A stretch of 45,288 nt of DNA from Macrostomum lignano (lineage: Eukaryota), in contig NIVC01004454.1 of the NCBI GenBank assembly GCA_002269645.1, positions 1-45,288 on the forward strand. The letters are read 5' to 3'. Under the pieces are notes generated by a model. That model was not told where the DNA came from and made no database searches. It worked only from the letters and a program-made list of their open reading frames with translations. Shown piece after piece: positions 40,463-45,052 of the stretch. The first letter of the stretch is position 1; the number at the start of each line of letters is the position of its first letter. A program made the translations under genes and the position numbers.

Positions 40463-40930
40463 TCACTCGCAAGGCTTGGTGGGGTCGGACTTGTCCACCT
40501 TGTGCCGCCGGCAGTCGGGGCCCAGCACCATCTCGCACTTCAGGCTTCTGGCCAGAGGCGAAGGAAGGCAGTAGTAGCCCGAGCCGCGGGACCTGCAACG
40601 CGAGCAGCTGCCAGCGGTGGTGTAGTCGTCCGGGCTGCCGCCCTTCAGCACGCGGATGCAGCGGCCACGGACGGAGATGTTCTCGGTCTCCTGGCGGATC
40701 TCCTTGCCGCCCAGGGTCTTGGTCTCGGTCTTCGGCTCCGGTGAGCACTCTTCCTTCTCCTCATCTTCATCAGCTTCGTCGGCCTCATCGGCCTCATCGA
40801 CATTGTCTAAGAACTCGGTCCCGTCTTCGATGGAATCGTCGTCGGCGTTTTCAAAGTTGGCATAGTCAGCGCGCACCGTCGCCGCCAGTAGGGCGAAGGC
40901 GAGGGCGAGAGAGAGCAGGGCGAAGCGCAT
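40463..40930 (-). CDS. Secreted cysteine-rich protein, paralog 1 (155 aa; true start is Met69 of the tracked ORF)
   Basis: Signal peptide MRFALLSLALAFALLAATVRA, D/E-rich spacer and a 94-aa domain with 8 Cys. The start is supported by alignment with the paralog at 45052 and by a TATA-like element inside the tracked N-terminal extension. Confidence 0.88.
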   Translation of the reverse strand: MRFALLSLALAFALLAATVRADYANFENADDDSIEDGTEFLDNVDEADEADEADEDEEKEECSPEPKTETKTLGGKEIRQETENISVRGRCIRVLKGGSPDDYTTAGSCSRCRSRGSGYYCLPSPLARSLKCEMVLGPDCRRHKVDKSDPTKPCE

Positions 40931-41011
40931 GGCTGGTTGTGCTGGGCTGTTGATTGTGCAACTGAAGAGGCAACTGCCTTTGCTTGGCCGGGGCCTTTCT
41001 GCAGCGCTAGC

Positions 41012-41018
41012 ATATATA
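41012..41018 (-). promoter_or_regulatory. TATA-like box of paralog 1
   Basis: CTATATATG on the minus strand about 85 bp upstream of the ATG, at a similar distance to the TATA box of paralog 2. Confidence 0.55.
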
Positions 41019-41444
41019 GAGGTGCGATAGCAGCCCGTGCAGAGGAGGTGAATTGCCGCACGTGTCGGTGGACAAGCGTCTTGGGCGCTGCAGACTCGTG
41101 CCGCAGGTGGTCCCATATGATGAGCGGCTCTCACACAGCCTGCACGGGGTAAGAGATGTTTTTCGATTATACAATATTCTGCACAAACAATTTGTCCATT
41201 GTGTGTCTCGAATGGCTTAGAGGCAGAATGGTTACAGCAGCGCTTCTATTTCTGTTTGACTCAGAGAGCGCGGCGCGGCACAGGCGGACTGCTTCATAGC
41301 TTTTAGCCGTCATAAACAGTTGCCATTTGAATGAAAATAATGGAAACTTTACCCTTCATCGGTCCTGTCTGCGCTGGAAAACTTGTAAACAACTGCCTGC
41401 TAGGCATAGCTGCTGGATGCTACGAGTAATAATTCAATAATTAT

Positions 41445-41716
41445 TAATAATAGTAATTGATTACACCTGCCCTAATGACCAGATATGCAACCGACAGCTC
41501 AGCCAAAACACATGAAGGCTGCCTCCGGGACTGGGGGGTCGCCACACACACACCCTGAATTACCCCAGCTAATGCTGGCACCCATTTTACAGCTGGGTGA
41601 ACTGAAGCAATGCACAGAGCTACATGTAAATGTCTTGCTCAAAGACAAAAATTGTTCCGAGTGGGTCGAGAATCGAACCCCCGACTTTCCAGTCCGATGC
41701 TCTAACCACTAGACTA
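41445..41716 (-). mobile_element. Diverged tRNA-derived SINE, copy 5
   Basis: Aligns with the other copies, with internal deletions. Confidence 0.87.
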
Positions 41717-42998
41717 GCTATTGAGCTTTGGGCACTCAAAGGCATCCGGTGATCACACGCGGGCACACAATAACGCAGGGTGTACAGCGCCCCCAGCTTT
41801 CTTATCAAACATGCATGTACATGTACACTCTCCATGCCTTAGGGTTGGCCCTTGTATAGGCAGTAATCACGGGACAAGCCCGAATTATTGATTTTGCGGA
41901 ATTGAACACGGACCCGTTATCGCTGAGCTTTTCTTTCTAAAGTATAATAAACTCCAATATAATATTCAATTTAAATTATAGCAAAGTTGAATTGCACCAA
42001 CAGTGTTTTAAATACATTCGATTTTAAATTGTCAATTTGATTTGATATTATTTCACAAAGAGAGATACAAAAATGAAATTATAGAAAAATTTATAAAAAC
42101 CATGATATAAGCTACACGCATGAGGCTTAATTCATGTTGGCTTCATAAATAGGTTTAAATAATCTGTTTTGCGTGAAAAATATTTTACTGGCTTTTGTAT
42201 TTATTTTTATTATTAATTAGGTGTTCATTAGTTCAAAGTAACACAATAATATCATAAATGATTCATAACAATCAACACAACAACAATAATAATAATAATA
42301 ATAATAATAATATCAATATTATTACTATATTTACTATTATTATAGTAATAATAATTTAAACAAACGCAGCATGATGATGAAGTGACAACTAATGATCCAT
42401 TGGTCATTATATTTATAGGTCAATATAACAACCATAAAGAAGCGAAACTATTTCTCAAAAAATGAACGCTTTATTAATGCGTGAATACTCACAAGTAACT
42501 AGCCTTTAGGAGAGACTCTTGCATAGGAAATCTGCTGCGGCTGTCTATTCTAAAAATCATAATGCTTGCAGTAACTTGTAAAAACGCATCTACTTTTGAA
42601 GTTCTAAGATTTTTAATAGTCGTCCAGCCATGGTTAAATAATTGCAGGGCTGCTGGGCCAGGGGTCGCATTCTGTAGCTGTCTGTAAGCCTAAGAGCCTA
42701 TTCAATTTTACATCATTGAGTTCTGCTTCATTCTGCAGTGCACTATGGATGCAGACTTAAATGAATAGAGAAGAATTTTTATTATGGAGAATATAGAGAT
42801 TTTTATATATAGAAGGAGAGAAGACCGAGCAGTCGCTGTTTTGCTACTAAACGCTGCTGGCGCTGTTCTCAGTCAGAGTTCGTGATCTAGTTAACTGGGC
42901 CTCGATGGAATTCAAGAAAATATTTAATCAAAGTTTGAGTACTAGCATTTTATAATAACGCATGTAAATGGCCTCTATGACGTTTACGGCCGCAGAAT

Positions 42999-43002
42999 CA
43001 AC

Positions 43003-43067
<65 letters not shown>

Positions 43068-43420
43068 AACAACAACAAAAAAAAACAACAACAACAAAAA
43101 ACAAAAACAACAACAACAACGACAACAAGGGGGCAGAAGCAACTACAACTGAAAATTATTATAAAAAAACAGCGACAACAAAAACGAAAGCAAGAACAAC
43201 TTAAACTGCTGCAACAATCCTAATTCAACGACAACAACACAAAAAACAATAACAACAACAAAGTCAACAAAAACAACAACGAAAACAATAGCAACAACGA
43301 CAAAACAATATCAAAAAAGCAAAAGCAACGGCAACAAAAACAACAATAATGAAAATAGCAACGAAAAAACAACAACAAAAGACAGACAGTAAGAAACACA
43401 ATAACAACAACAACAAAATA
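42999..43420 (+). repeat. (AAC)n microsatellite decaying into an A/C-rich tract
   Basis: Read directly. It produces the poly-T and poly-V ORFs in the track. Confidence 0.95.
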
Positions 43421-43442
43421 CGCTGTCAAAGTCTTAAGAAAA

Positions 43443-44072
43443 ACCGCGAGCAGGCTTACAGCCAGGGCACGACTCTGGGTCAGACCGAACTCGGGGCTCC
43501 GGCGTTAGCCTGCCAAAAAAGTCGGGCGCCGCCTGTCTCTCCCCCCTCCCACGGTCGTCAGTGGCAGCACCATGCAGAAAAGGGTGTATCCGTACGATGT
43601 GACGACCTTCTGTGTTATACCGGTACCGATATTTCCCGAGAAAGTAGTAAACTACTAAAGTACTTTACAAGCCTCCGTAAGTCCCTGTTTGCACTCAACC
43701 GCAGGGACATCAGGGCGGTGACCACGTCCCTCTCGGATCATGGCTGTTTTGCCAGGCATCGCCACCTCCAGGGAAAGATCCGTAGTGAGGAATGCCCATT
43801 CTGCCTCTCTTACTCAGTCAGGACAGGCTCACCTACCTCGGCCCAAACCCGGACCTCTCCGACGTTTTCAGGCCGAGAATCTCTGCCAGCTCGTTCGCTA
43901 TCCAAGGGCTACCGGGAGGGGGACCGCGCTGCGGACACCGGCACCACCGGGTCTCCCTGCGCGACACCACAGCTCCAGCTGCCCATGGTCACCAGGGGGT
44001 TAGCGGAATTGGTGTCTACGCCTCCCCTCTGTATCCGGATGCCCGGAGCCCCCTGCAGCTGAAGTCAAGTAA
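43443..44072 (+). mobile_element. 3' part of a LOA/Lian-like LINE (post-RNase H region, broken Zn knuckle, 3' UTR and tail)
   Basis: LFALNRRDIRAVTTSLSDHGCFARHRHLQGKIRSEECPFC matches the L.R.D.R....L.GH..L..H....G....C..C motif. Tail GAAGTCAAGTAAGTCAAGAAGT. Homologous to 10080-10324 and to the peptide at ~7190-7240. Confidence 0.82.
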
Positions 44073-44539
44073 GTCAAGAAGTACCTTACAAGAGTTTTTA
44101 ATAACTTTGCGCGTTTTGCAGGTGCACGGCTGCAACTAACTGATATAAGCTTACTTAAATGATTTCTCCGAAAGCACGAACTTTACGAGTAGTGCGCTTT
44201 TGTTAAAATGAACCGATCTAGCATTTCCTGGAAATGCGACTGTCGCGTCTTTCCACTCAAGTCGTAGTTGAGTTTTACTTTTACAGTAAATGTAGTATAG
44301 TAGCACACAATAATATTGTAAAAGTCCACATTGTTAATTTTGATCGGAAATTCTCCAGTTCAGCTTTAGTTTACTAGCTGTTCGTCGATTTACTTTGAAA
44401 ACAATTATTAGTTGTGTTATTATATGGCAAGACGTCAGTCCTATCATGTCATTTGAATCTATAAAAGCCTAAGATAGTCACTCTCTCTAATTGTCATAGC
44501 ATTAGCAAAGTTATTTCAGCGAATCATCCATCACTGGCT

Positions 44540-45052
44540 TTATTCGCAAGGCTTGGTGGGATCCGACTTGTCAACGGAGTACCGCTTGCAGTCGGGGCCC
44601 AGCACCATGTTGCACTTCATGCTCATGGCCAGCGGGGCGCCAAGGCAGCGGCTATGTCCACCGCTGGATGTGCAGGTCGCGCAGCTGCCAGCCATGGTGT
44701 AGCTGGATGGGTTGCCGCCCTTCAGCACGCGGACGCAGCCGCCCTTGACGGAGATGTTCTCGGTCTCCTGGCGGATGTGCTTGCCGCCCAGGGTCTTGGT
44801 TTCGGTCCTCGGATCCGGCGAGCACCCGGCCTTCTCCTCCTCATCAACATAGTCGTCAGCGTCTTCAAGGCCGTCAGCATCGTCGTAGTCGTCGTCGGCT
44901 TCGTCAGCTTCGTCGGCCTGGTCGACATCATCGTAGGACTCGGCCTGGTTCTCGGCGAAGTCGTTGTCGTTTTCGAAGTCGGCATCTTCAGCGCGCACCG
45001 TCACCGCCAGGAGAGCGAAAGCGAGGGCGAGGGCCAGCAGGGCGAAACGCAT
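44540..45052 (-). CDS. Secreted cysteine-rich protein, paralog 2 (170 aa)
   Basis: Signal peptide MRFALLALALAFALLAVTVRA, a longer acidic spacer and the same 8-Cys domain. AATAAA overlaps the stop codon. Confidence 0.92.
   Translation of the reverse strand: MRFALLALALAFALLAVTVRAEDADFENDNDFAENQAESYDDVDQADEADEADDDYDDADGLEDADDYVDEEEKAGCSPDPRTETKTLGGKHIRQETENISVKGGCVRVLKGGNPSSYTMAGSCATCTSSGGHSRCLGAPLAMSMKCNMVLGPDCKRYSVDKSDPTKPCE

Follow-up and report, generated by a model that had tools for sequence, protein, structure and literature searches.

Lineage-specific families of cysteine-rich secreted proteins are common in invertebrate genomes. The precursors of alpha-defensins, big defensins, macins and conotoxins carry a signal peptide, an acidic segment and a basic disulfide-rich domain in this order, and their genes are clustered in tandem. 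In precursors of the conotoxin and defensin type, the signal peptide and the acidic segment are conserved and the mature region varies on a fixed cysteine frame. SVWC proteins are small, single-domain, eight-cysteine proteins that are secreted. The SVWC domain of arthropods (e.g. Vago, PF15430) and the VWC or chordin-like domain (PF00093, PROSITE VWFC, PS50184/PS01208) are small, extracellular, disulfide-rich and mostly beta, with a C-x2-C in the middle. Here we describe two genes, named B and A2, that share features with all of these systems. They lie on contig NIVC01004454.1 (45,288 bp) of assembly GCA_002269645.1 of Macrostomum lignano; the entire contig was analyzed and is called the window below. 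M. lignano is a free-living marine flatworm of microbe-rich intertidal sand (PMC6410801). Like orphan secreted cysteine-rich families of invertebrate gland cells, the two genes encode a signal peptide and an even number of conserved cysteines without a transmembrane segment, and they also share with such families single-exon coding, a TATA promoter, tandem duplication and a narrow taxonomic range. Judged by its sequences, the family belongs to the taxonomically restricted secreted cysteine-rich category. We consider it rather probable that its members are species-restricted secreted proteins in which an acidic tail is retained on a basic all-beta binding domain.

B and A2 are two uninterrupted open reading frames (ORFs) on the minus strand, arranged head to tail with their starts 4.1 kb apart. 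Their features are as follows.

44540-45052, minus strand: gene B (type B, GenBank cluster Mlig025292), ATG at 45052, stop at 44542-44540, 170 amino acids (aa)
44990-45052, minus strand: predicted signal peptide of B, aa 1-21, MRFALLALALAFALLAVTVRA, with a basic n-region, a 15-residue hydrophobic core and V-R-A at -3 to -1
44825-44989, minus strand: acidic spacer of B, aa 22-76 (55 aa), net charge -28 by charge count
44543-44824, minus strand: eight-cysteine domain of B, aa 77-170 (94 aa), net charge +5, isoelectric point (pI) 8.9, delimited by cysteine spacing and charge
45141-45147, minus strand: TATAAAT box 95 nt 5' of the B start codon, read from the sequence and in the same place in all B copies
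40463-40930, minus strand: gene A2 (type A), ATG at 40930, stop at 40465-40463, 155 aa
40868-40930, minus strand: predicted signal peptide of A2, aa 1-21, MRFALLSLALAFALLAATVRA, with Ser7 as the mark of the A2 array position
40748-40867, minus strand: acidic spacer of A2, aa 22-61 (40 aa), net charge -21 by charge count
40466-40747, minus strand: eight-cysteine domain of A2, aa 62-155 (94 aa), net charge +6, pI 9.0, delimited by cysteine spacing and charge
41012-41018, minus strand: TATATAT box 88 nt 5' of the A2 start codon, from the sequence and the alignment of upstream regions
40243-40248, minus strand: AATAAA, candidate polyadenylation signal of A2 about 215 nt past the stop, from the sequence

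The A2 and B proteins are 61% identical overall (BLASTP, E = 3e-57) and 72.3% identical over the domain (68 of 94 residues). Their signal peptides follow the common 21-aa pattern MRFALL[SA]LALAFALLA[AV]TVRA, in which V occupies -3 and A occupies -1. A scripted check gave one cysteine spacing, C-x28-C-x17-C-x2-C-x8-C-x10-C-x7-C-x13-C, for A1, A2, B and C, the first and last of which are family members introduced below. Both A2 and B contain an NIS sequon and end with VDKSDPTKPCE. The sequon is not family-wide: one type-C copy has NIF and type D lacks it. A preliminary description of this DNA, made from the letters alone, had reported the tandem pair, the 21-aa signal peptides, the acidic spacers, the cysteine spacing, the sequon, the common C-terminus and the 68 identical residues, and all of these observations were reproduced. 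The signal peptide stands at the N-terminus of proteins in which we read neither a membrane anchor nor a retention signal, and the UniProt name for type D is "Secreted protein".

Spacer and domain are opposite in charge. The spacers carry -21 to -28 and the domains +4 to +6 (pI about 9), and the charge of the tail is four to five times as large as that of the domain; the computed pI of the tail-bearing mature protein is 4.1-4.5. No dibasic, RXXR, furin-type or other recognizable cleavage site was found at the spacer-domain junctions (...DEEKEE|C and ...EEEKAG|C). Spacer length in the family ranges from 40 to 55 aa, coded by imperfect 9-bp and 18-bp tandem repeats. In B, 9-bp and 18-bp repeats at 44848-44917 code for (D/E)-A-D units, and in A2 a 9-bp repeat is present 3.7 times at 40767-40799.

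The start of A2 needed to be set. In the ORF list the A2 frame opens at GTG 41134, and the conserved start MRFALL... corresponds to ATG 40930; all homologues begin at MRFALL. The GenBank model of A2 is a protein of 217 aa (P0006) that starts at an upstream ATG at 41116. Its start is probably wrong, because the N-terminal extension (40931-41116, minus strand) holds the TATA box, is missing in every homologue and would make the signal peptide internal. A sister copy is annotated as a partial protein of 262 aa (P0009). TATA boxes at equivalent positions and the start context AGCCATG are kept in all five gene types (A1, A2, B, C and D). An additional ATG lies at 45103-45105 (minus strand), about 50 nt 5' of the B start; its ORF is out of frame and extends over the main start. 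This ATG would be inside or outside the B mRNA according to where transcription begins, and the predicted start site is about 30 nt past the TATA box.

To find relatives, one domain was compared with 5.8 billion protein clusters by a word-indexed search, a profile of eight sequences was run against the same collection (E <= 1), and a full HMMER profile search was made of 1.84 billion representative proteins. All relatives in both collections came from M. lignano, and the closest proteins are GenBank "hypothetical proteins" of this species. No homologue outside M. lignano was found in the protein collections, which probably do not include the transcriptomes of other Macrostomum species, and a scan of metagenome contigs gave no homologue either. 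By these searches the family is limited to M. lignano in the databases covered, which agrees with the lineage-specific family proposed earlier. Its members fall into four types: A (Mlig017599, Mlig020370 and Mlig033824), B (Mlig025292), C (Mlig016941) and D (Mlig017461 and Mlig032188). The type-C gene is alone on its contig within 10 kb on either side. Type D proteins are 139 aa long and have their own signal peptide and a short C-terminal tail, without the acidic spacer. The type-D domain is about 43% identical to that of A2 and keeps all eight cysteines, with spacing off by one residue in four of the seven gaps. Across types A-D the eight cysteines are invariant at 43-77% identity to A2. The paralog count called for in the preliminary description came to about 16 gene copies on ten or more contigs. 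Probably there are five loci behind these copies, with several alleles or homeologues of each. The genome of M. lignano is highly repetitive and partly polyploid, which inflates copy numbers, and five loci of this kind would fit that state.

The same genes were found in the same order and orientation on three further contigs of the assembly. NIVC01003232.1 carries A1, B and A2 spaced by about 4 kb, NIVC01002208.1 also carries A1, B and A2, and NIVC01002318.1 carries A1 and B within the stretch examined, which ends after B. On these sister contigs A1 is found upstream of B at a distance of about 4-7 kb. In the window the contig stops after 236 bp of sequence upstream of the B start. This sequence aligns with the upstream regions of B on the sister contigs, and A1 is missing from the window because the contig ends there. 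The A2 copies of the window, NIVC01003232.1 and NIVC01002208.1 have in common Ser7 in the signal peptide. As judged from this arrangement, B and A2 of the window are two members of a tandem array A1-B-A2, and the earlier suggestion that the cluster continues past the window end proved right. A DNA comparison gave no further family copy elsewhere in the window. The B protein is identical to the one encoded on NIVC01002318.1 and groups with PAA52486.1 and PAA59962.1. The B copy of NIVC01002208.1 (14609-15136) is frameshifted near its 3' end, and its 175-aa product (PAA59962.1) lacks the last two cysteines; this copy may be a pseudogene or a long-read assembly error. DNA likeness between A2 and B is limited to the coding regions (72% over 517 nt). 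Since the flanks are unrelated and similarity stops at the coding edges, the pair points to an old duplication and not to a repeat or an assembly artefact.

The eight-cysteine domain was compared with known domains by sequence and by structure. An hmmscan search of Pfam-A (E <= 10) with the two full proteins and eight domain sequences returned only sub-threshold noise. The most recurrent match was DUF3716, seen in four of eight members, with a best E of 0.009 and 14 bits against a cut-off of 22; the remaining noise included a CD1107-like match and matches driven by the acidic low-complexity region, and all of these were to unrelated families. Kunitz, Kazal, WAP, three-finger/Ly6, ShK and other cysteine-rich domains of Pfam gave no match at E <= 10, and the cysteine frame is unlike those of macin, defensin, Kunitz, Kazal, WAP and three-finger proteins. 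Searches of PDB sequences with one protein or with the family profile gave nothing at E <= 10. An early AlphaFold model from five near-identical sequences had a predicted local distance difference test score (pLDDT) of 52; its Foldseek matches were meaningless and were discarded. After two type-D sequences were added, the model reached a pLDDT of 85.7 and a predicted template modelling score (pTM) of 0.69, with eight beta-strands and no helix. Foldseek, which is weak on small disulfide-rich domains, returned a best E of 0.71 and template modelling (TM) scores of at most 0.28 when this model was compared with the PDB. With the same model the best E among BFVD viral models was 0.35. Thus the domain, described as unrecognised before any search, has no Pfam, PDB sequence or Foldseek match (PDB and BFVD) with the confident model. 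The helix-less model, together with a sequence that has no C-x3-C or C-x-C motif, also rejected a CS-alpha-beta defensin or macin identity.

To see how the parts of the protein evolve, we calculated the ratio of nonsynonymous to synonymous substitution rates (dN/dS) among types A, B and C. It was 0-0.14 for the signal peptide (0.12 for B against A2), 0.1-0.23 for the spacer and 0.66-0.88 for the domain. These values point to purifying selection on the signal peptide and the spacer. Within the domain, the first 36 residues, which form the long N-terminal hairpin, barely change, and residues 37-94 show 20-22 replacements with every cysteine kept. The synonymous rate (dS) between paralogs is 0.04-0.19 in the first 36 domain codons (44717-44824 and 40640-40747 in the window) and 0.34-0.50 in the remainder; between A2 and B it is also below that of the adjacent spacer (dS about 1.0). 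Either a short tract of conversion or constraint on the nucleotide sequence may lie behind the low dS. A1 (NIVC01002318.1, L003, 7254-8673) was also compared with C (contig L005, 9052-10483). The two are about 97% identical between -950 bp and roughly nucleotide 335 of the coding sequence; beyond that point identity drops, and the 3' flanks are unrelated. The near-identical part covers the promoter, the signal peptide, the spacer and the first third of the domain. Taken together, the low 5' dS and the A1/C mosaic suggest gene conversion or mosaic recombination of promoter and 5' coding sequence onto different 3' halves, so the dN/dS values need caution.

These results can be brought together as follows. 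Each gene would be a compact unit with its own TATA-box promoter and uninterrupted coding region, making a small secreted protein. The mature product is predicted to consist of a polyanionic, probably disordered N-terminal tail of 40-55 residues and a basic all-beta domain of 94 residues, whose eight invariant cysteines presumably pair as four disulfides. Since paralog D is little more than this disulfide-rich domain, the domain would be what does the work, as a binding module outside the cell. The constant N-terminal beta-hairpin may be structural or bind a constant partner; the fast-changing C-terminal half would form a surface that differs between paralogs, suggesting a recognition surface. 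The acidic tail probably stays attached, as an accessory to the domain that makes the secreted protein strongly negative. It may serve in cation-mediated storage in secretory granules or in electrostatic contact with basic partners, and the spacer-less basic paralog D suggests that the domain can work without it. The family would grow by tandem duplication, by gene conversion or mosaic recombination and by slippage of the 9-bp tail repeats. We infer secretion, retention of the tail, a binding function and the ranking of source tissues from these properties. Ranked first is a secretion of epidermal, pharyngeal or other non-genital glands, defence included, which we regard as quite possible. A reproductive secretion comes second with a smaller chance, release from the adhesive organs is third and very improbable, and the remaining probability goes to anything else.

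Several points weigh against this account. The AlphaFold model was built on only 8 sequences of 4 types, and the statement that the predicted fold is not known is valid only for the solved structures of the PDB and the viral structures of BFVD. Gene conversion may underlie the low dS of the first 36 codons and would then bias the estimated rates, and a dN/dS below 1 is equally compatible with relaxed constraint and with diversifying selection. Finally, the paralogs and the sister contigs are so nearly identical that RNA-seq reads are not assignable to given copies.

For this assembly, the gene models in GenBank were built from a genome-guided RNA-seq transcriptome from which novel transcripts below 0.5 reads per kilobase per million (RPKM) were dropped (PMC5730564). 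Because the gene models derive from RNA-seq, the family is transcribed, and the expression that the preliminary description looked for is present at the RNA level. A search for contigs encoding the family proteins returned GenBank genome contigs only and no RNA-seq-derived contigs. Mlig017599 and Mlig016941 are absent from the searchable texts of papers. Combinations of the seven family identifiers are absent from the supplements of PMC5816591, PMC5730564, PMC12732829 and PMC7336406, a weak negative given that the tables are incomplete and identifiers may differ between transcriptome versions. We also used the in-situ primers of Brand et al. 2020 (Table S11, PMC7336406; 457 unique primers), which cover antrum, prostate (Mlig-pro numbered 1 up to 76), gonads, cement glands and pharyngeal glands. 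They were compared with all family genes and about 1 kb of flank on each side. None of the 457 primers matched the family; the best had 4 mismatches in 18-20 bases, which is at chance level. The family is therefore not among the transcripts characterized so far in situ, and this negative makes a prostate or seminal-fluid role less likely.

Other explanations have to be weighed against a retained tail on a binding domain. The proteins could be host-defence precursors of the alpha-defensin type, in which the acidic spacer is a cleaved anionic propiece that neutralizes a cationic antimicrobial domain until release. The order of signal peptide, anionic segment and cationic cysteine-rich domain (pI about 9) fits this idea, as do the tandem array, the conserved signal and pro region beside a fast-changing mature part, and the life of M. 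lignano in microbe-rich intertidal sand. However, the junction of spacer and domain has no recognizable cleavage site, the charges are unbalanced (-21 to -28 against +4 to +6), for a membrane-active peptide the domain of 94 residues is large and its positive charge only mild, and paralog D has no propiece at all. In addition, the model is without helix and thus lacks the CS-alpha-beta architecture of defensins and macins. We consider this explanation distinctly unlikely. The missing processing site and a tail charge four to five times that of the domain indicate that the tail is probably not a cleaved propiece, as far as the sequence can tell; type D works without a spacer. On this point the preliminary description, which had called the spacer a propiece, does not hold, and its functional label "effector with acidic propiece" is not established. 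A role in reproduction is somewhat unlikely but deserves more weight than a cleaved defence precursor. The proteins would then be seminal-fluid (prostate) products, or female-tract, cement or shell-gland products, that act on the partner or the egg and evolve fast under sexual selection. A secreted, species-restricted and fast-evolving family of small proteins is what such a role would lead one to expect. Genes of reproduction and the tail region in Macrostomum are enriched in signal peptides, diverge faster and have fewer orthologues (PMC7336406), and M. lignano has many described transcripts that are limited to the prostate (PMC5977470). Against it stand the 0 of 457 matches to in-situ primers with prostate, antrum, cement-gland and gonad patterns, so that the family was not among the genes found by the tail-limited or socially sensitive screens. 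A third possible use concerns adhesion. Wunderer et al. 2019 found that negative molecules block adhesion of M. lignano and that positive ones block release (PMC6410801). Their prediction is a negatively charged releasing factor, not yet identified, by which the lysine/arginine-rich cohesive protein Mlig-ap1 is displaced (PMC6410801). That the polyanionic members are, or contribute to, this releasing factor of the duo-gland adhesive organ, with the eight-cysteine domain as a new disulfide-stabilised all-beta fold, is suggested by the charge of the tail and is highly doubtful.

The UniRef name of one type-B paralog (A0A267DTH6) is "VWFC domain-containing protein"; the other family members looked up are named "Uncharacterized protein" or "Secreted protein" only. 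Taken at face value, this name would make the family divergent VWFC (chordin-like) proteins, extracellular binders of growth factors (BMP/TGF-beta) or of matrix, and a local resemblance exists between C-x2-C-x-S-x6-C of the family and C-x2-C-x-C-x(6-14)-C of VWFC. Beyond this motif the comparison fails. The family has eight cysteines and not ten, C-x2-C-x-S in place of C-x2-C-x-C, and no terminal C-C-x(2-4)-C. Pfam VWC and SVWC matched no member even at E <= 10, and the profile search of PDB sequences, which include the VWC structures of collagen IIA, chordin and NELL, gave nothing at E <= 10. An hhalign comparison with five PDB-verified VWC domains returned a probability of 0.36% with 15 columns aligned, and no VWC structure was among the 50 Foldseek matches listed, with the same weakness of Foldseek on small disulfide-rich domains. 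The label is a marginal automatic call resting on a short local motif, and VWFC identity is close to refuted. It is about as improbable that the genes are non-functional or artefactual, as recently duplicated orphan ORFs or pseudogenes without a role, or as assembly duplicates. The frameshifted C-terminus of the B copy on NIVC01002208.1, the fairly high dN/dS of the domain (0.66-0.88) and a repetitive, partly polyploid genome that inflates copy numbers could be read in this way. However, although the domains diverge by 28-60% in amino-acid sequence, at least 16 copies of four types retain all eight cysteines, the signal peptide and the reading frame. Signal peptide and spacer appear to be under clear purifying selection, TATA boxes are retained, transcripts underlie the gene models, and the A-B duplication appears old (72% nucleotide identity, unrelated flanks).

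The rest of the window contains repeats and a few other genes. Between B and A2, a short interspersed repeat at 41436-41716 has copies at 17085-17382, 22397-22693, 23944-24251 and 27107-27256, and another at 43870-44078 pairs with 10081-10311; these interspersed repeats share 73-88% identity. Long (CAA)n and (AAT)n microsatellites lie at 42285-43416. A tRNA-Cys (GCA) gene at 38300-38372 (plus strand, Rfam 70.6 bits) is located about 2 kb downstream of A2, and its position next to a cysteine-rich gene is almost certainly a coincidence. Four well-conserved minisatellites were found at 38520-39406 (32 bp, 28 copies), 18683-19210 (40 bp, 13 copies), 27930-28673 (30 bp, 25 copies) and 37512-37761 (19 bp, 13 copies), and the 32-bp array sits between the tRNA-Cys gene and A2. 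The remnant of a retroelement lies at 12772-15447 (minus strand) and has an ORF for reverse transcriptase (RVT_1, E = 5e-17). The ORF that follows matches a tyrosine recombinase weakly (Phage_integrase, E = 1e-5, under the cut-off of Pfam), which makes the arrangement DIRS-like. A multi-exon gene at 26206-31974 (minus strand) is kyphoscoliosis-peptidase-like. Its first ORF (1118 aa) is GC-rich and of low complexity; the end of this ORF resembles a transglutaminase-like core by eye, and Pfam matched nothing there. The downstream ORFs of this gene match the KY-like Ig-like domain (PF23265).

M. lignano is a model for regeneration, bioadhesion and sexual conflict in which RNA interference (RNAi) and transgenesis are available. 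The family, compact and easy to probe, would give the databases a new domain family, with a predicted fold that has no solved relative. It would also be a clean case of diversification of an orphan secreted gene by tandem duplication, mosaic conversion and repeat slippage in the acidic tail. The short TATA promoters may serve as gland-specific drivers, and the proteins would be candidates for unexplained secretions in defence, seminal fluid or adhesive release.

Compared with the known systems, the M. lignano proteins differ in several ways. The VWC domain has its cysteines in another frame; in the eight-cysteine domain a serine replaces the third cysteine of C-x2-C-x-C and the terminal CC-x(2-4)-C is missing. 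In addition, the first cysteine of the M. lignano domain sits on a long N-terminal hairpin that VWC domains do not have. Unlike the precursors of defensins, macins and conotoxins, the proteins have no processing site, their domain is three to ten times larger and is predicted to be all-beta, their cysteine frame is different, and the charge of the tail is beyond what the domain could neutralize. The prostate-limited Mlig-pro candidates (Weber et al. 2018, PMC5977470) are from the same species and are likewise small, secreted, often without homologues and rapidly evolving. In contrast to that series, no published probe or primer matches the family, and there is no tail-limited or prostate expression on record. 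Compared with orphan families of invertebrate gland cells, which these genes resemble in so many respects, the family stands apart by its long polyanionic tail, coded by slippage-prone 9-bp repeats, and by a confidently predicted eight-strand fold without a solved match.

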